DNA of 64,000 nucleotides from Octopus bimaculoides (Eukaryota): NCBI RefSeq assembly GCF_001194135.2, contig NC_068989.1, positions 48,293,607 through 48,357,606 on the forward strand, given 5' to 3'. The position numbers were made by a program, and so were the translations under genes. Below are positions 31,934 to 64,000 of the stretch, one piece after another; position 1 is the first letter of the stretch; each line of letters starts with the position of its first letter. Below the pieces are notes generated by a model. It did not search any database and had not been told where the DNA came from. It worked only from the letters and a program-made list of their open reading frames with translations.

Positions 31934-32005
31934 ATGGCGTTATTATTACACAAAATAAGGCATGCGACCGTTTCTGACTGTGAAGACATTGTCCGTCTCC
32001 TGCAG
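31934..32005 (+). CDS. SAT-like copy 1, coding exon 1 (MALLLHKIRHATVSDCEDIVRLLQ)
   Basis: ATG at 31934; 72 nt ending CAG|gtattt. IRHATVSDCEDIVRLL matches the SSAT N-terminal IRPATAADCSDILRLI motif. Confidence 0.9.
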
Positions 32006-35000
32006 GTATTTATTTATATAACAGCAGTTTCCCCAACATTTTCACCTCGGCACAAATGTACAATAATGAAAAAAGTTCTAGAAGAAAAACAGCGTTTAAT
32101 TTTTTAAATATTTGATAAATGTTAAGATGTTTATTAATGTTGTTATGCAATAAACCTCCAGCTGAGCAATAACAAAACGATTACTGTACCGAACACTTAA
32201 CATTCGGTGATTTTTGGCGGGAATGACGGAAGCCTGGGATAGCTTACCCATAGAAGTAGGATTTTCTCCGTTTTGACGGAGATTTTTCTCTTTCTTTTTT
32301 CTTTTTTTTTTTTCTTTTTTTTCACAACACACATTTAAAATGATAGGGTAAAGCATCTTATGAAAACAAAGTTTTGTGTGCGGGAAGTAAAAGACTTTTT
32401 CAAATATTTTCTTTAAAAAATATTTGGATCTTTTTTAAAACGGGGGCCACATTTTTCATTAACGAAACACTTTGAAACTTGGAACACTGGTAGAATGTGT
32501 CATATAAAACATCTTTTTCTCTTAGTCTTCTTTAAAAAAAAAAGAAATCCCTAAGTTATTCCATGTTAAAGTTGTCGTATTTCTGTAATTTCAACCAATC
32601 ACTGACGTCCATTCAGCTGATATACATTAAGTGCCGACTACATAAACAAACGATTCTGAAACAATTCTATCGGTGATAGGGTTAGGGTTAGGGTTAGGGT
32701 AAAACAGCAAATTTAAAAAGAAAAAAGCAAATAAAACGAAGAAAAAAAAAGAAAATGAAAAAAGCAAATAAAACGAAGCTATGGCTTAATCAGCCAAAGG
32801 AGTAAATGTAAACAACTGAATACTTGTCAGTGATTGGTTGAAATTATCGAAATAAGACAATTTTTTACATGAAATAAATTCGAATACAAAAATATTTTCT
32901 GTTCTATAACACAAAATAGATAAGTATACGAAGTTTGAAAGTCTTTCGGTACCAAAAACACTACGTAAAACATTAATGAAAAATGTGGCCCCCGTTTTAA
33001 AAAAGATCCAAATATTTTAATCATTTGATAAAATCTTTTTAGTTAGTGGACACTTATTTTATGTTATTTTTATTTTTATTTTGATCTTTATTTATTTTAT
33101 ATTTGTCCATTAGGCTTTTTGGTAGTTTTGAATTTTTAGTCATTATATTTAACTTTTAATAAGCTGTTCTATTTGTATTTCATTAGAATATATATTTTTA
33201 CATTCTGTGATTTTATGTGTATGTATTATTTTTTTATGTGTTTGTAGACCATGGTGTTTTTTTATATATGATTAAATGTTTGAAGGGTAGTGTTGTATGT
33301 AAAGTCATTGACCCAAATTTAATGTTTGTTTTATAACCAATGGTTCTTTATACATATATACACATATGTATATATGTGATATCTTAATCTTGGTTCTTTA
33401 TACATATATATACATATGTATATATGTGCTATCTTAATCTTTTTGATGTGACTCTATACTGTTTTCTCCCCCATCGTGTTCTCTCCCATCCTTTTCTCTA
33501 ATTCCCTTTTTCTCCCCTCCACCATTTTCTATGTGTGTCTCTCTCTCCCCCTCTTTCTCGTTTTCTCTCTCTCATTGCTCACATGTGACCAATGTCCATC
33601 TTTCTTTTCCTTACACGATCATCTTTCTTTTCCTTCAGGACTGTCCAAACGACTGGATGTATTTATCTCTCTCTTCTGTCATTTCTTTTGTCAAAGAAAA
33701 TATTTCTCCAGCATTCGCTATTTAATCCTTGTTCTGATCTAATGATCCTCCATGTTTGTTTCCGTTCGGTTTCCTTGTATGTTTACGCTGTTCTGTTTCA
33801 GTTCCCAACTTTGACCCGCCATAAATCCCTCAAAAAACTGTGGTGAACTACCTTCACTCAATGGGCAAGGTTCAGAAACTCACTGCCTGGGTGCCACACA
33901 CTTTGAGCGAAAACAACAAAAATCAACCCTCCACAATCACTGCCAGATTGCTCGCTCAACATTGCTCAACACATGGTCACAGACAGTATTTTCTTTACTG
34001 CATTGTCACTGGCAATGGAAAATGGTTCCTTTATGCCAATATGAAGCAGTGAAAAGAATGGCTCAACCCCAGCAAACAAGTGATTCCACGAGCAAAACAA
34101 GACCTTCATCCTTGAAAGACCATGTTGTGTGTGTGGTAGGACTGGGAAAGCATAATTCATTACGAACTGCTTGAATACAACTAAACACTCAATGCGTATT
34201 CTACATTCAACAACTGCTCTGACTCAACAAAGCAATTCAGCAAAAAAGGCTGAATAGGTGAAATGGCATTCTTCTGCAACACATCACCAATCTGACCAAA
34301 GCCGCAATTCAAGAATTCTAATAGGAAGTGCTCCTTCATTCTCCAGACTCGGCACCATCAAATTTTCATCTCTTTCTCACTTTCAAACACTTTGTGTGGT
34401 TCGTCGTTCAGTAATGACATGGAACTGAGGGCTTGGTTGGATAAATTCTTTGAGTCAAGACCAGGAGATTTCTATTGCCAAGGCATCAAAAAAACCTATT
34501 GAACGATGGGAGGAAGTCATAAACAACAACAAAAAGTACATTATTGATTAGTTTGTTGTAGTTTTTTTGTTTAAAATAAATTTGAAAAAAAATGCTCTTG
34601 AATTATTCCTCAACCCAATATATTTTGAAAGAATTGGAAACGGGTGTTTAAATAACATAGGACTGAAGATTCTTGTTGAGATGGAAAGGAAAATGATAAT
34701 GATAATTCTAATGCTGCTTTTAATACTTATTTTTGGAGAAATTAATTTAAAAGCTGGAATTTTAATTTTTAAAATATTTTTTAAATATTTTGTGCTGCTC
34801 CATGTATCTTTTTCGTATTTTTATATATTTATTTATTTTTGGATGGTTTTTATCTTTTACTTGTGTCAATCATTGGACTGTGATCATGCTGGGGCACCGC
34901 CTTGAAGGGTTTTACTCAAATTGACCCCTTTATTTATTACATATTTTATTGGTCTCTTTTGCCGAACTGCTAAGTAATGGGAACATAAACCAACATCAAT

Positions 35001-35037
35001 TGTCAAGTGATGTGTGTAGGGTGGGTTCTAGCACAAC

Positions 35038-35099
<62 letters not shown>

Positions 35100-37029
35100 C
35101 ACACACATATATGATAGGTTTTCTTCCACACAGTTTCTGCTACCATATTCATTCACAAGACATTGGTCAACCTGATGCTACAGTTGAAGACACTGTGGAA
35201 CTGAACCCTAGACCACATGGCTGCAAAGTTAGCTTCTTGCCATATATCCATTGCCTTTTTTGGCATGGGTTGGACAGGTTGTCACAGTCAGAGTAAGTAC
35301 ATATTTGGTGGTACTGCTTACCTAGACAGATCAGGGTCTTCAGCTTTCTTGCATTTTACTTTTTGTTTGGTTTCTACAACTGGATGTCCTTTCTCACACC
35401 ACAGAGTATACTTTCTAGAGTGTACTGGGTGCTTTTTTTTTTCATAGCACCAACACTAGAGAGGTATTGTGTCCTTGACAAAACTGAAAGGTTCTCACAA
35501 CTTTACACTTTACAGAAAGTACTGGATATGTTTTTCATCACACTAGCACTAGAGAGGTAGCCATGTCCTTGACACAACTAAAGAAACCTCTTGCTCACTA
35601 GCTTTCTTAATAGAGTGAGCAACATTAATGATAGTCCTAAATGATTGTAATGAGAGTGGTATGTGATAAATGATGGAGAGATAGCAGTACTCAGTATTCT
35701 GAGATAAGCTTGCATATTGAAGGTAATTTCACAGAGAGGTAGAAATATGACAGAAGTTTATGTGGCCCAGGAGATAGGTCAAAGATCAAGGCCTAGTATG
35801 GGTGGGAGGAAAGAAATGTGCTGGTAGAATATGGAATAATGACTAACTGTACAAAAGGAGTTGTGGAAGAAGGGGTGAACATGGTACATATGATCCAATG
35901 TAGCCACCTGTGCAGAGACGATAGGATGGGCTGCAGTGGGGTGGTTAAGTGATGAGTGTTGTGGAAGGGAGGATGGCAATGTAGATGGGTCCTGTAGCAG
36001 TGATCAACACAAAGAAACATGAGGAATAGGGTCGTTATAGGTGCAATAGCATTCTTAGTTATACTGGAAGTAATGTATGGTAAAGAGTAAAGATCTCCTA
36101 CCATCCTTCACTACACCAGAATGTATAGTACAGTATGAATTGCATGGAGTGAATGATTAGAAGATGAGCAATAGGGCATGGGTGAAAGAATATTGTGTAT
36201 GACAAACTGAAGATGAATAGTGATGGCAAGGATGAGACAGTGCATTGTGTGATGAACATGAGAGACATCTGCTGCCATCTTTAGTTACACCAACAACAGT
36301 TTGAGAAGAAGATGCCAGTACCGCCTGAGTGGCTCTCATGCCAGTGGCACGTAAAAGCACCTACTACACTCTCGGAGTGGTTGGCATTAGGAAGGGCATC
36401 CAGCTGTAGAAACTCTGCCAAATCAGATTGGAGCCTGGTGTAGCCATCTGGTTTCACCAGTCCTCAGTCAAATCGTCTAACCCATGCTAGCATGGAAAGC
36501 GGACGTTAAACGATGACGATGATGATGATGATGGAGTGGTTGAGTGAAATGGATGAGAAACAAAAGGAATAGAGGCATGAGCAAAAAAGAGACATTGTGA
36601 CATTGGGGATAGTAATGTGGGTCATAAAAAGATGAGTGATAAGGATGTGTGATGCAAGAGATGAGAGCTATAGATGCAAGTGACAAGGGCAGTGAGTCAA
36701 ATGATATGGATGTTGGAGTAGTGAGAGATCATCAAAAAGGTTAACGGTATAGACTTGACGGTATATATGTATGTGCACATATATATATATATGTGCACTC
36801 ATGTACACACATGTAATGCTACCAGCCAATGTAATGTGGTCCTTTGTCATCTCCTCCTTGAAGTGTAACAGCTTCACATCTATCTTCACCACTTCATCTA
36901 GGCTTCATGTTTTTATTTAATATAAGTTATAAATTATAATGTAGAATCAAGTATCTAACAGTCTATAAATGATGAAGTAGATACATAATGTATTTGATGT
37001 ATTTTATAATTGGTAATCTAGATTTATTT

Positions 37030-37065
<36 letters not shown>

Positions 37066-40000
37066 GATAGATTGTGTGAATGATAATGTTCATAGTGTTT
37101 TTGAGTAGAATTTTTTCTTGTTAATACAAGGAACAAGAACAAACTGGAAAGAAGAGAAAACCACTTTCTGTTGATGGTAAGTTATTTTAAGCGGCCATAT
37201 TCAACCCAAATATTCTACCTGTTTTATGCTCAAACCAGACAAATCTGGCTTCTCACATCTACCTTATACACATCTACCTTATAGTGTCATTCTGAAAATA
37301 CACAATCATATCGAAATTTTGAAGTTATGAGATAAAGCATGATTCATTCAAAACAGCATGAATAAATAAGCATTGCATTTGACAGACTAATCTGAATACT
37401 AAAGGTTTAAAATGTCAAACAACACTGAAGTTCCATATCTTTGAATGTTAAAATTATATTGGGTTGGTTGCTAAATTTTCAATGACATTGAGAAGTTATT
37501 GTATGAGAAAAATGCATGTGAGACATGGATTTTTAACAGGTTAAGCAAAAGCATCTAGTTCAGTGGTTCCCAGCCTGGGGTCCACAGACCCCTGGTGGCC
37601 CGCAAAGGTAATACTGGGGATCTGTGAACTAAATTCAAAATTTTGTATGTATATATATATATATATATATATGTTGTTGGAACTCCGTCGCTTACGACGT
37701 CGAGGGTTCCAGTTGATCTGATCAACGGAACGGCCTGCTCGTGAAATTAACGTGCAAGTGGCTGAGCACTCCACAGACACATGTACCCTTAACGTAGTTC
37801 TCGGGGATATTCAGCATGACACAGTGTGACAAGGCTGGCCATTTGAAATACAGGCACAACAGAAACAGGAAGAAAGAGTGAGAGAAAGTTGTGGTGAAAG
37901 AGTACAGTAGGGTTCGCCACCATTCCCAGCCTTGTGGAGCTTTTAGNNNNNNNNNNNNNNNNNNNNNNNNNNNNNNNNNNNNNNNNNNNNNNNNNNNNNN
38001 NNNNNNNNNNNNNNNNNNNNNNNNNNNNNNNNNNNNNNNNNNNNNNNNNNNNNNNNNNNNNNNNNNNNNNNNNNNNNNNNNNNNNNNNNNNNNNNNNNNN
38101 NNNNNNNNNNNNNNNNNNNNNNNNNNNNNNNNNNNNNNNNNNNNNNNNNNNNNNNNNNNNNNNNNNNNNNNNNNNNNNNNNNNNNNNNNNNNNNNNNNNN
38201 NNNNNNNNNNNNNNNNNNNNNNNNNNNNNNNNNNNNNNNNNNNNNNNNNNNNNNNNNNNNNNNNNNNNNNNNNNNNNNNNNNNNNNNNNNNNNNNNNNNN
38301 NNNNNNNNNNNNNNNNNNNNNNNNNNNNNNNNNNNNNNNNNNNNNNNNNNNNNNNNNNNNNNNNNNNNNNNNNNNNNNNNNNNNNNNNNNNNNNNNNNNN
38401 NNNNNNNNNNNNNNNNNNNNNNNNNNNNNNNNNNNNNNNNNNNNNNNNNNNNNNNNNNNNNNNNNNNNNNNNNNNNNNNNNNNNNNNNNNNNNNNNNNNN
38501 NNNNNNNNNNNNNNNNNNNNNNNNNNNNNNNNNNNNNNNNNNNNNNNNNNNNNNNNNNNNNNNATATATATATATATATATATACATAAGGATAAGCATA
38601 TTAAAAGGGGTCCATGGGAAAACTCATTTAAATAAAAGAGTTGGGAACCACTGATGTAATTAAAATTCTTTCATAGAAAGTTTTGCTGTATGATACATCT
38701 AGTGGTCCAAGTCAAATAAACTTGGTCTTACCTGTGTGATGTTTCTTTGTAATCTGCATAGATTAAAGGCAAAAGAAATCACAAGCCAACCCCAAATCTA
38801 ATTTTGCTATCAAAATTATATCTTTTACTTGTTACAGTCGTTTGGCTGCGGCCATGCTGGAGCACCCACCTTCAAGAATTTTTTGAGTCGAATGAATTGA
38901 TCCCATTACTTTTTTAATGTCTGTCAAAGCCTGGTACTTATTCTATCAGTTGCTGTTACCAAACTGCTATGTTACGGGGATGTAAACACACTCGCACCAG
39001 TTGTCAAGCAGACATACACACACCCACACACACAGGTGTATGTGTGTGTATATATATGTATGTATATATGACAGGCTTCTTTCAGTTTCTGTCTACCAAA
39101 TTCACTCACAAGGGTTTGGTCAGCTTAGGGCTATAGGAGCTATGCAGTGCCATAGGAGCCAAGGTGCTATGCAGTGGGACTAAACCCAGAACCACCTGAT
39201 TAAGAAGCAAACTTCTTACCACATAGGCATGCCTATGCTTATGATGCTCAAGTTTGTCTAAAATATAGCAATTCACTCTCAGTCTTGAATTATGACTAGG
39301 AAATAATACCTATGGTTTAACTCAAATTATTCAGTCCTGTATAGTTTTGACACTTGGGGTTACTCTTTGAGCATTGAGCATGTTATATTTAGAAAATGCA
39401 ACTGACACTAATCTTTCGTCTATAAAGCTAACAGTAATCATTCACCTATTTACAGATAGCATTTATGTCATGCCTATGACACAGATGCTAATACTAATCA
39501 TAGTTTTGTTGTGACACCTTGAGCTAACACTAATCATTCATCTTTGTCATAAGTATGACACTTATCAGTTAACATTGATCATTCAATCATATATATATAT
39601 ATATATATATATATAGATAGATATATATATATATATATATATANNNNNNNNNNNNNNNNNNNNNNNNNNNNNNNNNNNNNNNNNNNNNNNNNNNNNNNNN
39701 NNNNNNNNNNNNNNNNNNNNNNNNNNNNNNNNNNNNNNNNNNNNNNNNNNNNNNNNNNNNNNNNNNNNNNNNNNNNNNNNNNNNNNNNNNNNNNNNNNNN
39801 NNNNNNNNNNNNNNNNNNNNNNNNNNNNNNNNNNNNNNNNNNNNNNNNNNNNNNNNNNNNNNNNNNNNNNNNNNNNNNNNNNNNNNNNNNNNNNNNNNNN
39901 NNNNNNNNNNNNNNNNNNNNNNNNNNNNNNNNNNNNNNNNNNNNNNNNNNNNNNNNNNNNNNNNNNNNNNNNNNNNNNNNNNNNNNNNNNNNNNNNNNNN

Positions 40001-43000
40001 NNNNNNNNNNNNNNNNNNNNNNNNNNNNNNNNNNNNNNNNNNNNNNNNNNNNNNNNNNNNNNNNNNNNNNNNNNNNNNNNNNNNNNNNNNNNNNNNNNNN
40101 NNNNNNNNNNNNNNNNNNNNNNNNNNNNNNNNNNNNNNNNNNNNNNNNNNNNNNNNNNNNNNNNNNNCTATATATATATATATATATATATCTATATATA
40201 TATATATATATATAGAGAGAGATATATATATACAAACATATATATATCTGTGTTTGTCCCCCTGCCAATTTGGTAGGTCTGGTGTTTTGTCACTTGCCAG
40301 AAATATTTCCATATCATCTATGTGTCTATTGTTTGAACTCTTAGTGCACAATATCAAATTTCTAGGTTTCTCTGTCATACATGTTGATCAGTATTATTAT
40401 TACTTATTACATTGGGATCGTTGGGAGGTTGGTGTTGCTGCCTGGGTAAACTGGTTGGGAGCACGTGGTTAGGGTTTCTTCATTGGAATGAATTGTTGGG
40501 GTGCTTAACTATGTTTGGAATGCTGGGGAGCTGGTTGTGCTGTCTGGATAAATCGGATGAGGATCCGTAGGCCGAGTTTCTTCATTGAGGGGTAAAGGGG
40601 ATCTCTTGGATGTTTCTAGTTGCTGGGGAGCAAAAATTACTCCTAACTCTAGGTTAGTTTCTTCTAATGTTTCTAATTGGTGAGTAGTCCTTGTTATTAG
40701 ATAGAGAATGGTTTACTTCTAAGCAATGGCTCAGTTTTATGTGTTTGTGTTCTTTTGGATGTTGATTGTTTGATTTAGGTGGACGTGTATTTATTTCTGT
40801 AGATGCATTTGTTCTGGATTTTTTTAGGAAGGGGTTATCTGAAGTGTTGTCTCTTTTAAATTGAGCTTCATAACTAAGGAAGAAATTAACACTGTTTTCC
40901 CATCATTGCAGGGAATTTATTTCTTCCGACTCACAGCTGTCTTTCCATAGTTTTATAACACTTTCCAAAACTTGTTCATCAGCATGTTTAGTGAGTTCGG
41001 TGAGCATTTCTTCATCAATCGTTTTATATTTTTGTTTATTATTCGATGCTCTGAGTTTGAGTATATAAAAAAATAAATGCACCCTTTTAAAGCCTAGCCA
41101 GGCTCATGGGCCCGGTTTCCCAGTTTGTATGGCGTATGTGTTCCCCATCTGGACGGGACACCAGTCCATTGCAGCATTACTCATTTTTGCCAGCTGAGTG
41201 GACTGAAGCAATGTGAAATGAAGTGTTTTGCTCAAGAACACAACGCATCGCCCAGTCCAGGAATCGAAACCACAATCTTACGATCATGATGCCAACACCC
41301 TAACCACTAAGCCACGTGCCTCCTACATTTTTCCTAGTGCTAATTTCTCCCCAAGTTTACTTTGCTGTTCGGGTTCTTGTGGGATTGGTTTAATTTGTAG
41401 TTTGCGTGGTAGAATTAAAGGTGTTGAGTTAATCCATTTTTCATATATTTCTGCTTTACTGTTATTTTTTATCATGTTCCAAAATTAAAATTTTCTAGCG
41501 TTAAGATTTTTTAACCAAATATGGCTAATGCGACTTTTAATTAAACATGCTGACATTGGTATATTTTCGTTATGGTTTAGGTATTTTGGTGATGAATCTT
41601 TTTCAAAGTTATTTGCGAAAAATGAATGCAGTGTTGTGCATAGCTCGTTCAAACTTTGACTAACTAATCGTAAAGTTGGAAATGGCTCAGAGATCCAGTG
41701 TAATATATGAACCATGTTCTGTTCTGGTTTAAACCCTTACTGTATATTCTGTCATATTTCATTTGACTTCATCTGATGCAAAATTATTTCACACAAACAC
41801 CCTCCACCTTGGTCAGATAAATAATGGCTCTGCTTGAGACTGAGTAGAACTATTATTTACCCAGTTAACTGTTGTAATAAGCATTACTGTAAATTGTTCC
41901 AGCGTTCTTTGATTACAGATATATCCATTTTATTTCTTGAAAGTGAAAACAAGAACATGCCAAAGAATGTAACAGTCAGTTGTCATTTCAGTGACTATGT
42001 GGGATGCTGTTTTATTAGTTCAACTAAATTTCCTAATTTTCTCTGTAAAATATTTCCCTATGATTGGTGTTATTTAATCCGGCCATATCCAGCCCAAATA
42101 TTCTACCTGTTTTATGTTAAAACTGACCAGATTTAACCTCTCACACCTTTCCTACAATGTCATTCTAAAAATATACAAGCACACCTTTGAGATCCTGAAG
42201 TTACTTGATAATGCATGATTAATTCAAAATAATTTGAATAAATAAACATTACATTTAACAAAGAAATCTGAACGCTAAAGAATTAAGGAAGTTTATACCA
42301 AACCTTTATCTATTTGTTAACAAATGCTATATCACAAATGTTTTCATTAGTTAAAAAATGTCTGGAGTTCTCTATTAACTTCTCAAATTTCTTTTAGTTT
42401 CCTAACACAAAGCTGAATAAGATATGATGTGACAACAAACCTTTTATCCAAAAACATAGTTTTCAGATGTTAAACTACTTTCTCTACAAACCGTTCCTTC
42501 TCTCAACAATTCAGTTTCTCACAATTTACAGTTATGGTAGATGAAGAAACAAGCTAATGGTTGTATTTTTATATCTACTGTGCTTCAGAGCTAAAAACCC
42601 ACTGCTTTGATGGAGAGAACTCTTTTAATATCCTCATTGCTGAAATGAATAATAAAGATTCTTCTAAAAGTAAGTGTTATTGAAAAATTTTCTTAAATAT
42701 TTTTTGCATCTTCTGTTGCAGAATCCAGTTTTTTTTTGGTTTTTTTTTTACATATAAACCATAAGTGTCTAGCAATGGCATTTAATGCTGGTTTCTTATT
42801 GTCCCAACAAATATTATAGGTGATGCTCCTCATTACAAATGGGTTTTCACTGAAGATTTAGCATGGATAGTCATTTCTTCAAACAAGAGCAATACATACT
42901 AAGCCCACCAAATATTGATGTTGAGAAATTCTGCTGTTTAAACAAAAATATTAGGAGGTACTCCTGTATTCAGACAATAGGAAATGCTCTTCTATCCAGA

Positions 43001-44122
43001 CAGTGTCAATAGAAGGTACTCCTGTATTTAAACAGAGATATTAGGAGATACTCTTCTACCCAGACAGGAACAGTAGGAGATATTCTTCTGTTCAAACAAA
43101 GATAATTGGAGATACTCCTGGCTGAGCTGATAAATATACACCTTAGTTCAGACTGTGACAATGGGTGATGGTCAATTATTTAGGATAATACAATAGGGGA
43201 GATGTATCAAGACAATAGGAGATGCCTCTGTGTTGAGAAAGAGAGGCGCATGGCTTAGTGGTTAGGGTTTTAGACTCATGATCGAAAAATTGTGGTTTCA
43301 ATTCCTGGACCAAGCAACATGTTGTGTTGTTGCTCCAGTCCACTAAGCTGGCAAAAATAAGTAATCCTGTAACAGACCAGCGTTCCATCCATGTGAGGAA
43401 TATATACTCATGTAACCAGGAAACCAGCCCTTATGAGCCAGTATGACACGAGAAGGTAACTTTACCTTACTTTTTTACCCTTCTGTTCATTTCAATAGTT
43501 TATAGGTTTATAGGTATCATTTCATGAGTAATCATCCCTCTAACCATTCGGTAGGTCTGGTGTTTTGTCACTTGCCAGAAATATTTCCATATCATCTATG
43601 TGTCTATTGTTTGAAGTCTTAGTATACAATATCAAATTTCTAGGTTTCTCTCTCATACATATTGATCAAGGCCAAAATACTTAAAGCTACTCTCTACCCT
43701 ACACCTTACTCCCTTTATTTTTGCCATCTTTCATTTTTTTATTTGTTTCGGTCATTATACTGTGGCCATGCTGGGGCACCACTTTGAAGAATCTTTAGAT
43801 GAATGAATCGATACTAGTACTTTTTTTTTAAGCCTGGTATTTATTCTGTCATTCTCCTTTGCTGAACTGCCAAGTTCTTGGGACATAAACAAACCATCAC
43901 CAGTTGTCAAACAGTGATGGGAGGCAAACACAGGCACAAAGATACATACATAGATATATGTATGGTACAGGCATGGCTGTGTGGTAAGAAGCTTGCTTCC
44001 CAACTACATGGTTCCAGGTTCAGTCTCACTGTGTGGAACCTTGAGAAAGTGTCTTCTATTATAGCCTCAGGTCAACCAAAGCCTTGTGAGTGGATTTGGT
44101 AGATGGAAACTGAAAGCCCATC

Positions 44123-44188
<66 letters not shown>

Positions 44189-48584: not shown

Positions 48585-48805
48585 CCCTTTAGCATTTAAA
48601 CCGGCCATATCCGGCCAAAAGTATTCTGCTTGTTTTATGTTCAAACTGGCCAAATCTGGTCTCTCACACCAACCCTACAATATCGTTTTAAAAATTAACA
48701 GCTACCTCATCAAAATCTCATAGCTACAAGATAATGCATGATTAGTTCAAAACAATGTGGATGAAAAAGCATTAATTTTGGCAGAATAATGCAAACACTA
48801 AAGGG
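48585..48805. mobile_element. piggyBac-like MITE
   Basis: TTAA-ccctttag...ctaaaggg-TTAA; relatives at about 37190 and about 42078-42285. Confidence 0.8.
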
Positions 48806-53439: not shown

Positions 53440-54986
53440 TCTATAAAACACAAGATGTTTGTGTGTGTGTGTACGTGATGTGGGTTATGCACGTCCACAA
53501 ATTAGCACGCATGTCGCTCCAATTTTAAGAGAACATTGTTCATGACCCTATCTGTGTTTTTGTCAACTTTTTCTCAGAGAGGCACCCGCGTATAGCTGTA
53601 AAAATCGATAAACTTTTACCAATTTTGAAGTTTGTTGACATGGCGAAGTCAAATCTGTGCGTACGCGCGTGAAGGAGAGAGAGAGNNNNNNNNNNNNNNN
53701 NNNNNNNNNNNNNNNNNNNNNNNNNNNNNNNNNNNNNNNNNNNNNNNNNNNNNNNNNNNNNNNNNNNNNNNNNNNNNNNNNNNNNNNNNNNNNNNNNNNN
53801 NNNNNNNNNNNNNNNNNNNNNNNNNNNNNNNNNNNNNNNNNNNNNNNNNNNNNNNNNNNNNNNNNNNNNNNNNNNNNNNNNNNNNNNNNNNNNNNNNNNN
53901 NNNNNNNNNNNNNNNNNNNNNNNNNNNNNNNNNNNNNNNNNNNNNNNNNNNNNNNNNNNNNNNNNNNNNNNNNNNNNNNNNNNNNNNNNNNNNNNNNNNN
54001 NNNNNNNNNNNNNNNNNNNNNNNNNNNNNNNNNNNNNNNNNNNNNNNNNNNNNNNNNNNNNNNNNNNNNNNNNNNNNNNNNNNNNNNNNNNNNNNNNNNN
54101 NNNNNNNNNNNNNNNNNNNNNNNNNNNNNNNNNNNNNNNNNNNNNNNNNNNNNNNNNNNNNNNNNNNNNNNNNNNNNNNNNNNNNNNNNNNNNNNNNNNN
54201 NNNNNNNNNNNNNNNNNNNNNNNNNNNNNNNNNNNNNNNNNNNNNNNNNNNNNNNNNNNNNNNNNNNNNNNNNNNNNNNNNNNNNNNNNNNNNNNNNNNN
54301 NNNNNNNNNNNNNNNNNNNNNNNNNNNNNNNNNNNNNNNNNNNNNNNNNNNNNNNNNNNNNNNNNNNNNNNNNNNNNNNNNNNNNNNNNNNNNNNNNNNN
54401 NNNNNNNNNNNNNNNNNNNNNNNNNNNNNNNNNNNNNNNNNNNNNNNNNNNNNNNNNNNNNNNNNNNNNNNNNNNNNNNNNNNNNNNNNNNNNNNNNNNN
54501 NNNNNNNNNNNNNNNNNNNNNNNNNNNNNNNNNNNNNNNNNNNNNNNNNNNNNNNNNNNNNNNNNNNNNNNNNNNNNNNNNNNNNNNNNNNNNNNNNNNN
54601 NNNNNNNNNNNNNNNNNNNNNNNNNNNNNNNNNNNNNNNNNNNNNNNNNNNNNNNNNNNNNNNNNNNNNNNNNNNNNAGGTTGTTGGTAAGCTTTCCTAA
54701 GTTACTCCAATCCAGATCCCCAATGCAAACCTTCAGATCAGCCTTCTCCTATGCAGATCTCTAATGCAACATTTAAAAAAAGAGTCAATAAGTGAAAATA
54801 ACCAATAAACTGATTCCTTATGGGATTTCCCAATCAAATTGCCAGCAAACCATTTTCAGCCAAACCAATTTCAACGGATTTCGCTCAAATCTGATGTCGA
54901 TGTTACTTATTTTTGGTTTGAAATAAAGGACTTAATCATTTAATAATCCGAGCTTAATCCCGAGCAGCGCCGGGTTATACTGCTAG
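53440..54986 (+). mobile_element. Non-autonomous Helitron candidate (about 1 kb is N)
   Basis: A|TC 5' end (tctataaaacac..), 3' hairpin cccgagcagcgccggg then CTAG|T, no TSD. Confidence 0.6.
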
Positions 54987-55169
54987 TATACTGTAAAACA
55001 TTCCTATGATTTGAGATGCATAAGCTAGAAAGAATATTTTTATGGTGGAGGAAGGTAAAATGAAGTATGTATGAATAAGCTTGCATATAACAATATAAAA
55101 AGGTATAACTATATAGGTAAAAGATCAGACAGAAAGAGACGGTATGTATGAATACACACACACACAAAA

Positions 55170-55385
55170 GGCAGTGAGCTGTCAGAAACATTAGCACGCT
55201 GAGCAAAATGCTTAGCGGTATTTTGTCTGCTGCTATGTTCTCAGTTCAAATTCCGCCGAGGTCGACTTTGCCTTTCATCCTTTCGGGGTCAATTAAATAA
55301 GTACCAGTTACGCACTGGGATCGATATAATCAACTTAATCTGTTTGTCCCCTCTGTGTGTAGCCCCTTGTGGGTAGTAAAGAAAT
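55170..55385 (+). mobile_element. SINE family A, near full length
   Basis: Similarity to 848-1075. Confidence 0.85.
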
Positions 55386-55658
55386 AACACACACATATCC
55401 ATATATATACATATATGTAAGAGTGACAGGACCAATGAAAGAAAAAGGCACTCAACACATTTAGTAGGAGTTACATGCATTATTATTTTTAAAAGTTTCA
55501 TTCTGTTCCATGTGGCTTAAAGTTTCACAGGTCCCTAACAGAAACTTGTCACTTTCAGGCCTTGATTACCAAATCAGTAATCTAAGCCTGAAAGAGATAG
55601 GTTTCTGCTAGAAGGTCACAAAAGTTTAAGTCACATGGAGTGAAATCAAACTGTTTTA

Positions 55659-55733
<75 letters not shown>

Positions 55734-55762
55734 TATTATAATAACAATAATAATAATAACAT
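55659..55762. repeat. (TAA)n microsatellite
   Basis: Direct reading. Confidence 0.95.
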
Positions 55763-55829
55763 CATTATGATATCATTAATCAGCTTCCCCATGGACTGAT
55801 TAACGATACATCTAGCAATGGTGTCACAA

Positions 55830-58145
55830 AAAAAGAAAAAACACTGGTAATTGCGCAACCTGATAATCGCTACTTCATATGAGTAACAGTGAAAAAGCAA
55901 GATATTGTGAATAACAGTGGTAATGAAACCGAAGCCAATGATTGTGACAGTGTTACACCCGGTAGGCTCAGAGATTCTGGTCTCGCTACAGCCTATCGAT
56001 ATCCAGAAAGGGACCACCACACACGGCATAGATGGAGCAAGCAAATTAATGCTGTGTTCATGGAATGTTACTACCTGTGCAGCCCAGTAGATGAAAATGG
56101 TGCTCAAATTAGGGGTTACCGTCAACATATATATGATCATTGGAGAGAAAATGGATTGTTTCAACTCACGGAACAGAGATTATGTGATCAAGCTAGAACA
56201 ATAAGAAAAAACTGTTCACAGAAGTAGAGCTCGAAGCTATCAAAAGACGGGTCTTGGAAAATAGCAGCAGAAATAACGATGAAAATGCAGTTCTTACTAA
56301 TAAGAGTAATCTCATAGAACTGGAAAGGGGCTGTGGTAGTTTACCTGATGAAAGACATGTAGATGGTCTAAAAGAAGACAATAAAACTAATGGCGACGTG
56401 ACAGATGAACAAAAGGCAATCTACAACAGAATAAAGGCAAGACTACAGGAGAACAATAGCGACATTATTTGGAACCTTAAAAAGGTTGATCGATGGAAAC
56501 TGAACCAATGTCAAGGAAATTCTGAAATGCATCAGAACAAACAACATCACAGAAACAAACAATTTGATCAAGGCAGCAAGTATTATTGTAGCAGAAAACG
56601 TGGGTGTTGATGTCAAGAAAAACAAACATAATGGGAGTGACAAGAGAAAAGACCCATGGTGGAAAAGAAGAATCCAGGCAGAGTTAGACATGCTCTCAAA
56701 GAAATCTCTGTGTTAGACTGAAAAGAGAAAGGGGAACTTAAAAGCAAACAAAAATACAGGGCGCTGAAAAGGAAGTATAATATTGAAAGAAAGTAGTAAT
56801 GGAGGAACTGAAACAGCACCTCGTTGCAAAGATGTTAAGATACGACCAAAGAATGAAGGGTTACCACCAGAATAGGTTATTCAGAGTAGATCAGAAGAGA
56901 TTCTATAAAGAAGTAAATGGAGAGTGTACAGATGAAAAGTTGATACCAGATAACAATGAAAGTCAAAGGTTTTGGAGTGACATCTGAAGCAAAGACAAGG
57001 AACACAAGGAGACTGAATGGTTGCAAGAACTGAAACAAACAGTAGTCTGTCCAAAACAGGCAGAACTAGTCATTTCAGTTAGGGAAGTGAAGGAAATCAG
57101 CAAAAAAATGAGCAACTGGAAGGCCCCGGGACCAGATGGAGTTCAAGGCTATTGGAACAAAAGATTTGGTGAATGACATGCACGAATAGCTGTGCAGCTC
57201 AACACCTTGTTAAACGCCAACCAAGTAACACCAGAGTGGTTGACATTGGGTAGGACAGTGCTGTGCCTGAAAAACATTGAAAAAGGCAATACGGTAGACA
57301 ATTACAGGCCGATATCCTGTTTGCCACTTATGTGGAAGTTATTGACAAGAATACTCACAGACTCAATGTACGAACAACTGGAAAAAAATGGAGTCCTGCC
57401 ACATGAGCAGAAGGGTTGCAAGCGTAAGTGCAGAGGTACAAAGGATCAACTCCTGATAGACAAAACTGTACTTAGAGACTGCAAGAGGAGCAAAAGTAAC
57501 TTAGCTATGCCATGGATCGACTATTGTAAGGCGTACAATATGATCCCACATTCTTGGATTATGGAGTGTATTGCATCAAATGTTGAGCGATTGCTTGGAA
57601 AAAGTATGGCAAATTGGAGGACGGACCTGACAGCATACGGAAGAAGTTTAGGGACAGTAGAATTTGGAGGAGCCCCTTCCAAGGGGACTGCCTGTCCCCA
57701 CTGATCTTTGTACTGTGCTTGATATCACTAACACTGATTTTGAGGAAAGCAAAAACTGGGTATGTATTCAAAAGCTGCCAACAAAAAATCAATCATTTGT
57801 TATTCATAGACGACCTCAAACTTTATGGTAAAGATGAAGCCCAACTCAGTTCCCTTGTTGATATGGTGTATACCTTCAGTGCTGATATCAGAATGGAGTT
57901 CAGACTGAGAAAGTGTGGTGTGTAAGTCTTGAAGAGAGGCAAAATCAAATGTATGGGCAAGCTAACAGTACCATCAGGAGAGGTTATGAAGCAGATGGAA
58001 GAGACAGGCTATAAGTACTTGGGGATTTTGGAAATGGATAAACTGATGGAGAAATAAATGACAGAAAAATTTAAGGTGAAGTACTTGCGCAGACTGAGAC
58101 TGATCCTTAAGTTGAAATTAAACGAACGAAATAAGATCTGTAAAA
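55830..58145 (+). mobile_element. R4/Dong-clade non-LTR retrotransposon, 5' region through RT (decayed, 3' truncated)
   Basis: RWSKQINAVFMECYY..GYRQ..TEQRLCDQARTIRKN; DPWWKRRI; NWKAPGPDG; [16 protein letters not shown]; [14 protein letters not shown]; [10 protein letters not shown]; HLLFIDDLKLY; YKYLGILE. Confidence 0.92.
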
Positions 58146-58526
58146 ATTAACACTTCCTTCTCCAAGCCTAGATTCGAGACCTGCTTTGTTGTGAGTGAGC
58201 CAAAGTGTGTTGTTAAGTACGATTGGATTGATACAGGAATAGAAACTACAAATGTCAAACTGGATAAACTTAGTGCATTTCTTGTTATTAATAGAACTAA
58301 ACCAGTCAACCACTTGGAACGAATTTGACCATAATTTAAGCTTTAATTTTTTAACTAAGGTAGGAATATATTTGTCTAGGATATTTTTGCTAACTACACC
58401 GATGTCAGAACTAGAAGGACAAATAAGCCGTAAGGATGGGTTATTAAAAAAATTTTGTTTGTGATCTTTTAAAATAAAATGAGATTGTTTAGGATCAAGG
58501 GGTTCTGTCTTCATCTGTAAGTCATA

Positions 58527-59574
58527 TGCAGCGTACACTTGAGGAAAATTCCTCTCCTCTCTATTATATATACATATGAACGTAGTAGATAACAGCTAGC
58601 CTTTGGCTGCATTTTGGACCCTGTTGTGTCCACTACTCTGATTGGTTGGTATTGGCGCAATTTGTCTCTTGCTCTATCGTGCGCCAATATGCAACCCAAC
58701 CAATCGCAGCTTTCAAATAAGGTCACGTGTGACAGCCTATTTTATACCTCAGTTTGAGCCAACTGCTTCCTATAAAACTCCAGCTTCACATCGTCTCAAT
58801 GTCCTTGGTTCCAGACCTTTTAAGGTCTAGCCACTGACCACACAGGACGCAGTCAGTACCAGCGACAACACAACAGCAGCCACATGGAGACTTATCAACA
58901 TCGTCCAACAGAATTCGATGACCTCCATCTCCATTGCCACCATTCATACTAATGTCAATATCATCTCTCTACGTACACAACAGCCAGTACCTCGCACAGG
59001 TTCTAAGACAGTGTTCGTGAATTACTTCACCCTGGATCAACAGCAAATATACAACCTGCGAGAACTCCTGTACCAAGTGACCCAGGTAGCAGCATCACAG
59101 CCACAACTTCACGTACGACATGTACCTCAACTGGCTCTGCATAGCAGCCACAATTTTACGTACGACATACCTCAACCAGCTCTGTATCATCGCCACAACT
59201 TCTTAATACAGCATTTCAACTATCGTGTACAATTGACTACGAACTGATATTTATCATTCTTGTGTCTATGAACATTCTTCTAACTTCATATTATAGACTC
59301 ATTCAATGCTCGGTACTTAACGCACATGTATATACCTATGTCTATACACACACACTTTGTTCTCATGATGGCCTGTCTATTATTGGGTAAACATGACACG
59401 CACACAGTCACACATGTTAACATATCAATAAAGTCTTCTCTTAGACATTCTACCCGGTTGCGTCACTCTTTTTCCTCTGGCTCATATATGCATTTATTCT
59501 TTTATATTTATTGTATCGACCGTGTGATGTACTAAGGAGCCATTCTTGTCACCTCACTTCACACGGTCGTTACA
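58527..59574 (+). mobile_element. Solo LTR (1048 bp), probably Gypsy-type
   Basis: TG(cagcg)...(cgtta)CA termini, 4-bp TSD CATA at 58523-26 and 59575-78, host reading frame restored on excision. Orientation inferred from TATAAAA (58771) and AATAAA (59427). Confidence 0.8.
58638..58777 (+). promoter_or_regulatory. LTR promoter-like module: paired inverted CCAAT boxes and TATA box
   Basis: gattggttgg..tattggcgca / tgcgccaata..ccaaccaatc, then TATAAAA at 58771-58777. Confidence 0.45.
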
Positions 59575-59967
59575 CATATTTCTCCATAATTTTCTTAGCT
59601 ACAAGATTGGCTTTCCTGATTGCACTTTTACTAGTAATCCTATAATTCTTTTGAATTTCTTTTCTATGTAATTCTAGGTAATAGTCCTTGGTAAGCCTGT
59701 ACAGGTTTCCTGTTTTATCCGATTGAACTAGTATCTCATCCATGCTGTGAATTTCTTTGGTGATATTAGGAAGATACCTCAGATGTTTATTCCTTAAGGG
59801 TGAACGGTGGGATTTCACATTCCTCATGATAGATCAGAGATCGTCTTCAAACTGTTTCAATCTTGGGTTAGGTGGAGGATTGTTTTTAGATTTGAACAAT
59901 TTTTTTAATTCAGAAGCTGGATCATTAGAGGGCTGTTTAATATCTTTATGTATGTGTGTGTGTGCTT

Positions 59968-60200
59968 GTGTTATTTCTTTACTACCCACAAGGGGCTACA
60001 CACAGAGGGGACCAACAAGGACAGACAAACAGATCAAGTCGATTATATCGACCCCAGTGCGTAACTGGTACTTATTTAATCGACCCCAAAAGGATGAAAG
60101 GCAAAGTGGACCTCGGCGGAATTTGAACTCTGAACGTAGTGGCAGACAAAATACCACTAAGCATTTCGCCCGGCGTGCTAACGTTTCTGCCAGCTCGCAG
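59968..60200 (-). mobile_element. SINE family A, near full length
   Basis: Reverse complement of the 848-1075 type. Confidence 0.85.
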
Positions 60201-60403
60201 CCTTGGTGTATGTGTGTAAGTGTGTGTCTGTGTTTGTACCCCCACCATTGCTTGACAACCGATGTTGCTGTGTTTACTTCCCCGTAACTTAGCCGCATGG
60301 GAAAACACACCGATAGAACAAGTACTAGGCTTACAAAGAATAAATCCTGGCTGCAGTCACATGACCGAAACAAGTAAACCAATAAAAGACCATGCCATTT
60401 TAA

Positions 60404-60431
60404 TCCCGAGCAATGCTGGGTATATCTGCTA

Positions 60432-60432
<1 letters not shown>
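60404..60432 (+). mobile_element. Helitron 3' terminus
   Basis: cccgagcaatgctgggtatatctgCTAG|T, same family end as 54958-54986. Confidence 0.55.
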
Positions 60433-60509
<77 letters not shown>

Positions 60510-60520
60510 ACTAGTATATA
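60433..60520. repeat. (TA)n microsatellite
   Basis: Direct reading. Confidence 0.95.
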
Positions 60521-60948
60521 TATAAAACCAGTTCACTTCCCATCTTTATCTTATTATAGCTTTCTCTCTCTCCCTTTCTTTCATCAATTCTTAGGTTTAT
60601 ATGAGCATTTCTTTCTGCCACATAAACTTTAATATATTCTCATCTTCCCCTCATTGTCTTAGTTGCTTTTTTCTCCTCCTATACCCTCTGACACTTACAT
60701 AATCATAAATCTTACACTTTCCGTCCTTTTATTCCCTTCCCTCATGCATTATATACTTTCTGCATTGTCACTGCTGTCTGTTGAATGTTTTATATGTAAT
60801 CTTTCAGTATCTACATATCATTATCATTCCTTTTCTGCTTCTTTTCCACAGCTCTTCATGTGTCTTTTCTTTATCTACCTCTTTTACATTCTTATATTTT
60901 TGTATTTATTCTTTCCACCCTCTTTTAACATTCATTTACATTTATATT

Positions 60949-60951
<3 letters not shown>

Positions 60952-61020
<69 letters not shown>
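60952..61020. repeat. (CT)n microsatellite
   Basis: Direct reading. Confidence 0.95.
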
Positions 61021-61025
<5 letters not shown>

Positions 61026-62429
61026 TTCATTCTTCTCCCTGTTTTCTTTCATATATATACCTCTTTGCCTTTCATCCTTTTGGGGTTGATAAAATAAATA
61101 GCAGTCGAACACTGAGGTTGATGTAATCAACTAGCCTCTCTCCCACCAAAATTTCAGGCCCTGTGCCAATAGTAGCAATTGTTAGCGCATTGAACAAAGT
61201 GCTGTAATAACTATTGCTTCTTGTTGGCTGCATATAAGATGATAAACAACACTCATGGACAATTAATAGAAGCTTTATTTACTGCACATATTCAATAATC
61301 TTTTGGTCAAGGGATGAAGAATCTGTGGGTCATTGGGTGAAGAATAAAGACAACAATTTATACACACTGGGAGAGACAACTCTGGAGTTTATGGTAAAAT
61401 AGCTGGTATGTGTAGATCGATGACTGGGCTGTCACAACTAGGAAAATATTGTGTTAAATTCAATGCCAAATTTGTACTTTCAATCTGCAGAGCTGGAGAA
61501 AGGATAAAATGAGAATGAAGTTGTTAAAACAACAGTCTCAACATTCTGAGGTTACCACCAAAAATCCCCCCTTCTATAAGGCTCATTAGAAGGTGCTAGA
61601 CAATCAAAGCACATCATGGCTCAATGCTGATTGGTCAGTTAATTGGCCAGCATTCGCATGGCTGTCCAGTGATTTGGTTTTAAATCTGCTACAATGTTTA
61701 GCAGCATTTCTTCTGGTTTTACATTCAAAGTTCAAATGCCAGCAACTTTACCTTTCATTCTTCCAGGCACAATAAAATAAATATCAGTTGAACACTGGTA
61801 GACATAACTGACTAGCCTCCCTCACACCAAAATTTTAGGCCTTGTGCCTATAGTAAGAAAGGATTCTTAACCTTGTTTTGGATGAAAGGTGGATTAGTAG
61901 AATCACATTACAGCATTGGAAAATGTGAAAATTAATATTTATAAAATTTAAGTTTTAATTTCTTGAAATTATTTCCCCTTTTCTTTAAGAGTAGCTCAGA
62001 TTTGCTGCTAGGTTATTTTTGTTTTCTTCCTCCAACTAAGAAAGTTAAATCAGTCAAAAACTTACTTTTTTCCCTCTGTCATTCATACTTGAATTATCCA
62101 AATTCTTTATATCTACCCACATATGGGTTTTTTTTAGCTCTCCAATCACTTTTCTTAATCATACAAATTACTGTTGGGTAAAAATATCATTAATGACTTT
62201 ATCAAATTTCATATAAGAACCTAAATAACCAGAACTAAATTATTTCAAAATACAATTTTTTGGGACATTTTCTTGACAAGTCTGTATTTTCAGATTTAAG
62301 ATACTGTTATGAAAGCTTGCTTTAGTGCATGGTGGGGAGAGCATAACATAAAAAAGGGTGGGAGGAGACTTGATTAGTAAGAACAAAAGATAAAGAGATT
62401 GTTCATTATCAACATCGTGTTATTTCAAG

Positions 62430-62498
62430 ATGATGGCAGTAACTGTTTCGCGGCATGCAATAGCTGATGACTGTGAACATATTATTGGTTTATTCAAG
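62430..62498 (+). CDS. SAT1/SAT2-like: SAT-like copy 2 (tandem paralogue), coding exon 1 (MMAVTVSRHAIADDCEHIIGLFK)
   Basis: ATG at 62430; 69 nt ending AAG|gtatgt. RHAIADDCEHIIGLF is homologous to RHATVSDCEDIVRLL of copy 1. Confidence 0.85.
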
Positions 62499-63226
62499 GT
62501 ATGTGCTGAATACTTTAAGTGAACTTTTATTTGTTAATTAATTTTGGGGGCTAAAATATATTTAAGTATCATAAAATCTTCATGTAATCTCCTTTATTGT
62601 GACAGCCAGAACTGCAGCATTTTATCATTATGAACAAAGTGAGCTCGTCATATTATATTTATTTAGTTGTCCAAATAACAAAATAACAATCAGCTCTTGC
62701 ATTGCATCTTTTTTCATGCACTCCTTTGTTGAGCATTCAACTTTACAGTCCAAACCAAAATAATGCAAAAAACAAAAATATTGAAAAATACTTGACTGCC
62801 CAAGTCATTTTACTTGCTTGAAGAACTTTTAATGTATATGTTGCAACTGTGACTATTCTATATGATTTTTTTTCTCTTTTGTCAACTCTCTCAATATATT
62901 GAGCAAAATTTAATATAATTCCTGATAAAAATTATTTCAGAACAATACAATTTAAAACAAATGCTAACTCCTATCTAACTAATTATCATGAATTGTATTA
63001 AATTTATTGAATATTATTGTAACCCTTGTTCACTATTTTGTCAGTGTTTGTGTTTGTGTGTGTGTGTGTGTGTGTGCGTGCACGTGCGCGCACATGTGTG
63101 TGTGTGTGTACATACACACATGGAATTTTGGTTTAAGCACCCCATATAACTCCTTATAACTTTTTCTGTTGGACTTAGAAAATTTTTGCGAATTTGTGTT
63201 TTAAACACTGGAGTTGATACGATTGT

Positions 63227-63296
<70 letters not shown>

Positions 63297-63867
63297 CTTT
63301 CTGTTTATCCCCCACCAGGTGTTGGTATGTTTATGTCCCCATAACTTAGTAATTCAGCCAAAGAGATTCATAGAATAAGTATCAAGCTTAAAAAATAAAA
63401 TAAGTACTGGGGCCAATTAGTTTGACAAAAATTTCAAAGTGGTGCCCCAACTTGGTCACAGTCTAATGACTGAAACGAGTAAGAGATAAAAGACATTACA
63501 CACACATATATATAAATATTTTTTTTCTTGGAACCATGTCTGCATCAATGAATTATTGAATTTAACTTTTCTCTGAAAGATAATGAGGCGATAATGTTGG
63601 GTGTCAAAAACATTGAGTGATCAAGAATGACCAATGAATGTGTGATTGAAAGAAAGACAGGGAATTATTTGTTTATGTGAACTCAAACTGATCAATGAAT
63701 TGGATCTTTTTGGTGCAGACCTGTTCAAAAAAGCCATAATATGAAAATTGTAATCTTCATAATTAGAGGTCTTAATAATATAGATTATATGAAACTTTCA
63801 GTTAATTTTAATTATAGTGTTTAACTGGTGTTTGATTATGAGAATATATTTTGGTTCTCAATACTAG

Positions 63868-63913
63868 GAACAAGTAAAATCTGGAGAAAAGAAAAACCCA
63901 CCTTCTGTGGATG
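63868..63913 (+). CDS. SAT-like copy 2, coding exon 2 (EQVKSGEKKNPPSVD); gene continues beyond the window
   Basis: ttttggttctcaatactag|GAACAAG...GTGGATG|gtaagt; same 46-nt length and phases as 37131-37176, with similar acceptor flank. Confidence 0.87.
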
Positions 63914-64000
63914 GTAAGTATATGTCCCTTATTGCTTAACTTTGTTCCAATCAGTCTTGAATGTGAAATAATAATTAGTGTATTTACAAACATGAAAATT

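Follow-up and report, generated by a model that had tools for sequence, protein, structure and literature searches.

Introduction

SSAT, an obligate dimer, catalyses the rate-limiting step of polyamine catabolism. Y140 is its general acid and E92 is its proposed general base, acting via water. No account of cephalopod SSAT-like pseudoenzymes, or of other non-catalytic SSAT relatives, was found in the literature, and the only relevant paper was a transcriptome study of Octopus maya (PMC8976471). Here we report on a stretch of 64,000 nucleotides from the Octopus bimaculoides chromosome CM046609.1 (48,293,607–48,357,606), the whole of which is called the window below. Positions 52430–64000 of it match this chromosome (GCA_001194135.2) at 100% identity. 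The window holds a complete SSAT-like gene (copy 1, type A) and exons 1 and 2 of another on the same strand (copy 2, type B), and a third copy (copy 3, also type B) follows beyond its end. In the A and B proteins of octopods both catalytic residues of SSAT and its cofactor loop have been replaced. Judging from the sequences, we put at roughly 0.58 the probability that these proteins are pseudoenzymes, that is, non-catalytic proteins of the SSAT fold that act by binding.

Loss of catalytic and cofactor residues

Residues are numbered as in human SSAT1, and the substitutions have been read from a MAFFT family alignment and from hhalign profile columns, which were in agreement. The A/B set comprises seven octopod genes from O. 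bimaculoides, Octopus vulgaris and Argonauta hians. R101, G106, Y140 and D93 do not vary among 22 canonical sequences, and E92 hardly does. E92 is replaced by T in all octopod A and B genes, and Y140 is replaced by T in type A and by S, G or E in type B. Motif A, which has the form Q/R-x-x-G-x-G/A at the start of alpha3, is absent from 7 of the 7 genes, its positions being taken by E/Q...N/F/S...L/C. The human acetyl-CoA pyrophosphate loop R101-G-F-G104-I-G106 corresponds to E-H-K-E-N-I-L in copy 1 and to Q-Y-E-F-I-C in copy 2. Exons 3–5 of copy 2, which the original prediction had left to be checked for the same loss, do exist downstream and likewise lack motif A. A deletion of three residues in the motif A loop was also considered and is excluded by both MAFFT and hhalign.

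The region encoded by exon 2 has changed in character as well. Helix alpha-1, acidic in SSAT (ELAKYEYMEEQ), is rich in lysine and arginine in the A/B proteins (EQEQTGKKRK or EQVKSGEKKN). This exon had been described as remodelled, and it is indeed diverged and basic; it has not been newly built, however, because the stretch that it encodes corresponds in the alignments to SSAT helix alpha-1 and the loop behind it, so that it is a diverged homologue and not a new exon. The exchange of Y140 for F has by itself been reported to abolish the activity of SAT1 (PMC7271128). Given substitutions of this kind, the balance tips slightly toward a loss of catalysis in the A/B proteins, which probably no longer acetylate anything.

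Homology and predicted fold

Copy 1 matched SSAT1 in a phmmer search of the PDB with an E-value of 3.8e-9 (residues 6–164 against 4–162), and its full-length matches to mouse and human SSAT1 and to human SSAT2 had E-values of 4e-9 to 9e-8. When a profile of six A/B proteins was compared by hhalign with the 22 canonical sequences, the probability was 99.85% and the E-value 6.4e-31 over 164 aligned columns, and the identity of the A/B proteins to SSAT1 was about 22–24%. AlphaFold models, as distinct from solved structures, gave both copies the GNAT topology beta1-alpha1-alpha2-beta2-beta3-beta4-alpha3-beta5-alpha4-beta6, with a pLDDT of 89.9 and a pTM of 0.83 for copy 1 and a pLDDT of 88.0 and a pTM of 0.84 for copy 2. 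The top PDB matches returned by Foldseek were SSAT1 for copy 1 and SSAT2 for copy 2, with TM scores of 0.68–0.81. A Pfam scan of copies 1 and 2 gave no family, even at E-values up to 10 or 0.01, whereas the type C paralogue described below passes the Acetyltransf_1 model with 32 bits against a cut-off of 20.7.

The two copies had been proposed to be same-strand, divergent SAT-like paralogues. Their full proteins align with a BLASTP E-value of 2e-49 and 46% identity, and it is this comparison that settles the homology and not the short peptides first quoted in its support, which taken alone gave window tblastn E-values of 0.61 and 1.4 and were not significant. Copies 1, 2 and 3 all lie on the plus strand and together span about 60 kb, and between copies 1 and 2 nothing but transposon fragments was seen. 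It is nearly certain that copies 1 and 2 are SSAT-family genes in a tandem array.

Phylogenetic relationships

An HMMER profile search of 1.84 billion representatives has yielded 520 relatives, nearly all of them canonical SSAT-like proteins. The nearest relatives are a two-domain protein of the cuttlefish Acanthosepion pharaonis (CAE1317262.1, named 'speG'; P0008), a similar Logan transcript (P0009), two further Logan sequences, and an octopod paralogue termed type C. Type C was found in A. hians (P0011), O. vulgaris (P0161) and O. bimaculoides (XP_014777891.1), and lies on the same chromosome as the A/B genes, tens of Mb away. In a neighbour-joining tree with 200 bootstraps, type A was supported at 97%, type B at 96%, A and B together at 97.5%, and the divergent cephalopod clade at 96%. 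Gastropod, arthropod and human sequences fell outside this clade, as did a canonical cuttlefish SSAT (P0044) with the motifs LEDFYV, RKIGMG and NFYKRYGA. Human SAT1 was included in the tree, and sequences of SATL1 and SAT2 were left out of it. The cephalopod-only clade excludes human SAT1 and the other animal sequences sampled, and within this sampling that argues against orthology of the A/B genes to a single vertebrate paralogue such as SATL1. The tree is distance-based and has long branches, and attraction of fast-evolving sequences may have contributed to it.

The residue losses are spread unevenly over the divergent clade. None of its members has kept E92. Type C and allied sequences such as P0014 and P0030 keep R-x-x-G-x-A/S/C and are still recognised by Pfam, the cuttlefish copies are intermediate (N/S-K-K-S-V-A), and in octopod A/B genes the motif is wholly gone. 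Since type C, P0014 and P0030 keep the motif without E92, the loss of E92 alone did not end motif retention. The original prediction had placed the divergence of the two copies from SSAT before their duplication, and this is supported by the sequences of Argonauta, which has both types with the same basic exon 2 and lost motif A; the shared divergence is accordingly older than the A/B duplication, and by the same comparison the A and B lineages arose before the Octopus–Argonauta split. The claim of a lineage-specific expansion has stood in part. There is a cluster of paralogues, but it is small (O. bimaculoides has three copies, O. vulgaris two), and the wider clade is cephalopod-wide, including cuttlefish and type C.

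Two further observations were made among the relatives. Many invertebrate SSAT-like proteins are 320–350 aa long and contain two full GNAT domains (P0008, P0010, P0013, P0018, P0019 and P0022, from cuttlefish, thrips and parasitoid wasp among others), so that tandem duplication or fusion of an SSAT-like gene seems to recur across animals. The Logan sequences P0054 and P0056, SSAT-like and seemingly unrelated, are also without motif A (PEENTDENQLGLL and PNTNYLDAGKQLL) and have Q at the position of E92, which suggests an independent loss of the motif in another lineage.

Selection, reading frames and expression

In the seven A/B genes examined from the three species, the reading frame is open through all exons, and the splice positions are identical with the single exception of one acceptor in copy 3, which is shifted by 3 nt. 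By the Nei-Gojobori method, dN/dS was 0.29 for copy 1 against O. vulgaris A (Fisher p 0.002), 0.39 for copy 2 against O. vulgaris B (Fisher p 5e-4) and 0.55, not significant, for copy 3 against O. vulgaris B. Octopus and Argonauta orthologues gave values of 0.17–0.32 at saturated dS (Fisher p 9e-8 and 4e-12 in the two pairs tested), with a protein identity of about 50–58%. Overall, these comparisons indicate selection that is purifying but relaxed.

Evidence for transcription has come from another species. RT-qPCR primers have been published for a 'diamine acetyltransferase 2 (SAT2)' of the O. maya oviducal gland, a gene that was up in mated females by RNA-seq, the trend in qPCR not being significant (PMC8976471). 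These primers match the spliced B-type coding sequence (CDS) with one mismatch each, and the forward primer crosses the junction of exons 2 and 3. The predicted amplicon is 130 nt on the CDS of copy 2 and of O. vulgaris B, against the 127 nt reported for O. maya, and an acceptor 3 nt downstream, as in copy 3, would account for the difference. The primer matches are indirect evidence that a B-type orthologue is transcribed in the oviducal gland of O. maya. For copy 1 no direct transcript support was found beyond four RefSeq isoforms, and no Logan transcript contig carried the exact copy 1 or copy 2 protein.

These data bear on the idea that the A/B genes lack any function at the protein level and are pseudogenes in decay or artefacts of annotation. 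Such an idea would fit the loss of the catalytic residues, the fast evolution (46% identity between A and B, and the low identity of the Octopus and Argonauta orthologues), the absence of the exact proteins from Logan contigs, and the inconsistency of the automatic models, which include fused A+B and B+B' forms in three species. It is nevertheless very improbable, as five open exons with canonical splice sites at the same positions have been kept in seven genes of three species, dN/dS is significantly below 1, and a spliced B-type transcript in O. maya is indicated by the primers.

Interpretation of the A/B proteins

The chief alternative, possible but doubtful, is that the A/B proteins are active acyltransferases in which cofactor binding and catalysis have been re-engineered, for instance around the tyrosine of a KYF motif or D95, and which act on a new substrate; with a basic helix alpha-1 this substrate would probably not be polycationic. 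In its favour are the high-confidence prediction of a GNAT fold, the long-lasting purifying selection and the retention of R-x-x-G-x-A/S/C without E92 in type C, P0014 and P0030. Set against this are the joint replacement of R101, G104 and G106 by E/Q, by bulky or polar residues and by L/C, the loss of E92 and Y140 in all A/B proteins, the failure of any Pfam GNAT model to recognise copies 1 and 2, and the inactivity of SAT1 carrying Y140F alone (PMC7271128).

Several observations weigh against the pseudoenzyme reading, some of which favour an active enzyme directly. The beta4-alpha3 loop has kept its length in type B and has gained one residue in type A. A tyrosine two residues past the position of Y140 (in KYF) is nearly invariant in the A/B proteins and could in principle substitute for it. 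Other SSAT residues persist as well, namely D93, N133 and, in the majority of copies, W154. GNAT proteins bind acetyl-CoA largely via backbone amides, so that a degenerate motif A is by itself no proof of lost binding. The dN/dS values of 0.3–0.55 are relaxed for an enzyme and are silent on what the constraint protects. The support for expression consists of primer matches in another species and for type B only, and the qPCR difference in O. maya was not significant. Among the cephalopod sequences recovered, a canonical SSAT was found only in the cuttlefish A. pharaonis.

The A/B genes are old tandem duplicates within the SSAT family that have shed the cofactor loop and both catalytic residues and yet have been retained under selection. 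If their proteins are pseudoenzymes, they may serve as partners or decoys of an active SSAT-family dimer; since SSAT works as an obligate dimer, pairing with an active paralogue readily suggests itself. Alternatively, they may bind a different, probably acidic, ligand. In either case they would carry out no polyamine acetylation, polyamines being disfavoured as the ligand because helix alpha-1 has turned from acidic to basic. A broader and unlikely extension would be a coleoid family of dead SSAT-fold proteins, of which the octopod A/B pair is the extreme form, regulating polyamine acetylation non-enzymatically. Members of such a family might form inactive heterodimers with canonical SSAT or sequester ligand, the oviducal gland might be a site of action (sperm are stored there and polyamine genes change on mating), and the fused A+B gene models of three species might represent genuine read-through, giving single-chain pseudo-dimers.

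Gene structure in the window

Copy 1 is a five-exon gene at 31934–46868 (+) in which all introns are GT-AG (Table 1). Its middle exons have been located by stop-to-stop reading frames, and the in-frame join of the exons reproduces exactly the 173-aa protein that the original prediction had assembled. RefSeq holds the identical sequence as XP_052826633.1, under the name 'thialysine N-epsilon-acetyltransferase-like isoform X4'. An alternative donor of exon 4 at 45017 adds VLF (isoforms X1 and X3) and an alternative acceptor of exon 5 at 46683 adds IYFYIQ (isoforms X1 and X2), and with these two sites all of the isoforms X1–X3 can be reproduced from the window. RefSeq names X1, X3 and X4 of copy 1, as well as copy 2, as thialysine acetyltransferases and X2 of copy 1 as SATL1. 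When the window was searched by tblastn with human SAT1, only weak matches to exon 1 of both copies and to exon 5 of copy 1 were obtained.

Copy 2 corresponds to XP_052826634.1 (P0005; 174 aa; 'thialysine N-epsilon-acetyltransferase'), of which residues 1–38 are encoded by the two exons within the window. The four peptides on which the pairing of the copies had been based were found on the plus strand where they had been placed, RHATVSDCEDIVRLLQ at 31958–32005 and RHAIADDCEHIIGLFK at 62451–62498 in the first exons, and EQEQTGKKRKPLSVD and EQVKSGEKKNPPSVD in the second. A 46-nt exon 2 with equal phases in both copies, which had likewise been noted, is borne out: the phase is 0 after exon 1, one extra base follows exon 2, and the two exon 2 sequences, taken together with their AG/GTAAGT flanks, share 83% identity over 60 nt (blastn-short). 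The array had been noted as invisible to the ORF track, but its genes are not hidden: RefSeq already lists copy 2 as well as the exact 173-aa protein, and the O. maya study assayed a B-type orthologue under the name 'SAT2' (PMC8976471).

Positions outside the window are given on L001 (copy 2 and its flank) and L002 (copy 3), both of O. bimaculoides, and on L003, the gap-free locus of O. vulgaris.

Table 1. Exons of copies 1 and 2 and assembly gaps (window positions unless marked L001).
Feature	Position	Strand	Remarks
Copy 1 exon 1	31934–32005	+	72 nt from ATG; ends in phase 0 (CAG/gt); MALLLHKIRHATVSDCEDIVRLLQ
Copy 1 exon 2	37131–37176	+	46 nt; EQEQTGKKRKPLSVD (37131–37175) and 1 nt; flanks AG/GTAAGT
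Copy 1 exon 3	42589–42669	+	81 nt; ELKTHCFDGENSFNILIAEMNNKDSSK
Copy 1 exon 4	44854–45008	+	155 nt; degenerate beta4/motif A region LRITDVYVSEVTEHKENILRDL
Copy 1 exon 5	46701–46868	+	168 nt (165 nt and TAA stop)
Copy 2 exon 1	62430–62498	+	69 nt; ends in phase 0 (AAG/gt); MMAVTVSRHAIADDCEHIIGLFK
Copy 2 exon 2	63868–63913	+	46 nt; EQVKSGEKKNPPSVD (63868–63912) and 1 nt; flanks AG/GTAAGT
Copy 2 exons 3–5	L001 12580–12660, 13024–13184, 16175–16342	+	just past the window end
Assembly gap	37947–38563		copy 1 intron 2
Assembly gap	39644–40167		copy 1 intron 2 (second gap there)
Assembly gap	45733–45823		copy 1 intron 4
Assembly gap	46897–47615		begins 29 nt beyond the stop of copy 1; in the 3' UTR or intergenic
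Assembly gap	53686–54677		intergenic

All five N runs lie clear of the exons; the closest begins 29 nt beyond the stop codon of copy 1 and the other four are at least 716 nt from exons. Collinearity between the L003 locus and the window extends from about 28.8 kb to the window end, aligned blocks flank every gap with order and orientation kept, and no extra SAT-like exons were present in the orthologous introns of this gap-free sequence. Because the gaps miss the exons and the gap-free O. vulgaris introns hold no extra exon, the gene model of copy 1 is independent of gap content. Searches of both strands of the window with copy 1, type B, type C, cuttlefish and gastropod proteins gave no further SAT-like copies.

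The surroundings of the genes are repetitive. N gaps and simple repeats abound at positions 1–31000; among the ORFs tested there, none was a SAT-like exon and no long one had a Pfam match. A mariner-type transposase fragment lies at 31029–31424 (-), about 500 bp 5' of the copy 1 ATG (Pfam Transposase_1, E 1.3e-6). The 15.5-kb spacer between copies 1 and 2 contains pogo/Tigger-like DDE_1 transposase fragments at 49848–50695 (-) (E 3e-15) and a reverse-transcriptase fragment, RVT_1, at 57192–57704 (+) (E 2.5e-7); only such transposon fragments, and no host gene, were seen in it. An Rfam scan of the window returned no matches.

The array beyond the window and in other octopods

It had been suggested that the array might go on past the window, and it does, with an orphan exon 1 and then copy 3 preceding a thimet-oligopeptidase-like gene (Peptidase_M3), which is the next gene after copy 3 and lies on the opposite strand. 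The orphan is an exon-1-like ORF with a GT donor at L001 22484–22552 (MVAPTVSWHTTADDCEHIIGLFE then GT), about 6 kb past copy 2 and before copy 3, and no exon 2 follows it in the sequence examined. Copy 3 has an exon-1-like segment at L002 2555–2620 and exons 3–5 at 9075–12130, and is represented in RefSeq by a partial model, XP_014783682.2. Its exon 2 was not found by blastn-short. In intron 2, however, copies 2 and 3 share 349 bp at 97% identity (L001 11500–11848), and this homology starts exactly at a 10-N gap (L002 6350–6359), 16 nt after the expected end of exon 2. Exon 2 of copy 3 is therefore probably unassembled and hidden in the gap. The 97% identity itself could be due to gene conversion or to an assembly problem.

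O. vulgaris has two copies only, A then B, within 36 kb and beside the same oligopeptidase gene. Argonauta hians has one B gene beside the Peptidase_M3 neighbour and one A gene on another scaffold. The B gene of O. vulgaris (L003 39160–46336) is a mosaic when compared with L001 10001–16342 and L002 2555–12130. Its exon 1 is 91% identical to copy 2 of O. bimaculoides and 80% to copy 3, whereas its exons 3–5 are 94–99% identical to copy 3 and 77–89% to copy 2; exons 1–2 and the upstream region were likewise observed to be copy 2-like. The mosaic suggests that a deletion took place in the O. vulgaris lineage via unequal recombination between two B copies, in intron 2.

Gene predictions at the locus have also joined copies. 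The 2015 O. bimaculoides model A0A0L8G6L6 consists of exons 1–2 of copy 2 and exons 3–5 of copy 3. Fused predictions in O. bimaculoides (an older release), O. sinensis and O. vulgaris (P0166, P0002 and P0003) combine exons 1–4 of A with exons 2–5 of B and use the exon 4 donor at 45017 (window 44854–45017 joined to 63868–63913). Such A+B models stem either from read-through transcription that recurs among these species or from an artefact common to the predictions. In O. vulgaris, the A copy retains an intact exon 5 of its own, with a stop codon.

The many gaps in the assembly, together with the 97% identical stretch of copies 2 and 3 that begins at a 10-N gap and the lack of an assembled exon 2 in copy 3, might be taken to indicate that haplotypes or scaffolds mis-joined at N gaps have been mistaken for a tandem array. 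This is scarcely credible as a general explanation, and for the A/B pair it is already refuted: the two proteins, at 46% identity, differ far beyond the allelic range, A is likewise followed by B and then by the same oligopeptidase gene in the gap-free assembly of O. vulgaris, and Argonauta has both types.

Comparison with known systems

The gene models themselves are not new, having been annotated automatically in RefSeq, and the array is otherwise an ordinary lineage-specific tandem duplication. As these models were available and one orthologue has been published under an enzyme name, the finding is less novel than it first looked. For the consistent loss of the catalytic machinery in a conserved cephalopod clade we found no earlier description. 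If the pseudoenzyme reading is true, the A/B clade would offer a clear-cut natural case of a GNAT pseudoenzyme whose fold has been kept since at least the Octopus–Argonauta split, with degenerate relatives in cuttlefish. In transcriptome studies such genes are labelled 'SAT2' or 'thialysine acetyltransferase' and taken for polyamine metabolism, as in the oviducal gland of O. maya, an interpretation that is probably wrong for the A/B genes.

Among described proteins, SSAT1/SAT1 (PDB 2b3v, 2jev and 3bj7) is like copy 1 in length class (171 against 173 aa), in full-length homology and in predicted GNAT fold, and is its best PDB match, with a TM score of up to 0.81. It shares with the A/B proteins the N-terminal R-x-A-x-x-x-DC, the LVGY strand beta3, D93, N133 and, in most copies, W154. 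It differs from them in E92, Y140, R101, G104, G106 and the acidic helix alpha-1, all of which are replaced in A/B, and in that the A/B proteins have no Pfam GNAT match. SSAT2/SAT2 (PDB 2bei; C. elegans 8yv7) is the best structural match of copy 2 and the source of the names given in RefSeq and in O. maya. The A/B losses are the same in comparison with SSAT2 as with SSAT1, so that the residues which define the enzyme are absent, and the name 'thialysine acetyltransferase' is an automatic transfer from the best hit.

Type C and the cuttlefish protein CAE1317262.1 belong to the same clade as the A/B genes (96%), have an exon 2 region of the EQ... type and have also lost E92. Type C differs from A/B in that it keeps R-x-x-G-x-S/C, matches Pfam Acetyltransf_1 and lies tens of Mb distant, and the cuttlefish copies differ in that only the last small residue of the motif is kept (N/S-K-K-S-V-A). 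As the cuttlefish protein has been modelled as two tandem domains, tandem duplication recurs within the divergent clade. A precedent for a non-catalytic GNAT is the pseudo-HAT domain of O-GlcNAcase, in which the GNAT fold has been kept under selection without the residues that bind acetyl-CoA. That domain belongs to an unrelated GNAT subfamily, is part of a larger enzyme and acts in another biological context than the A/B proteins of octopods.

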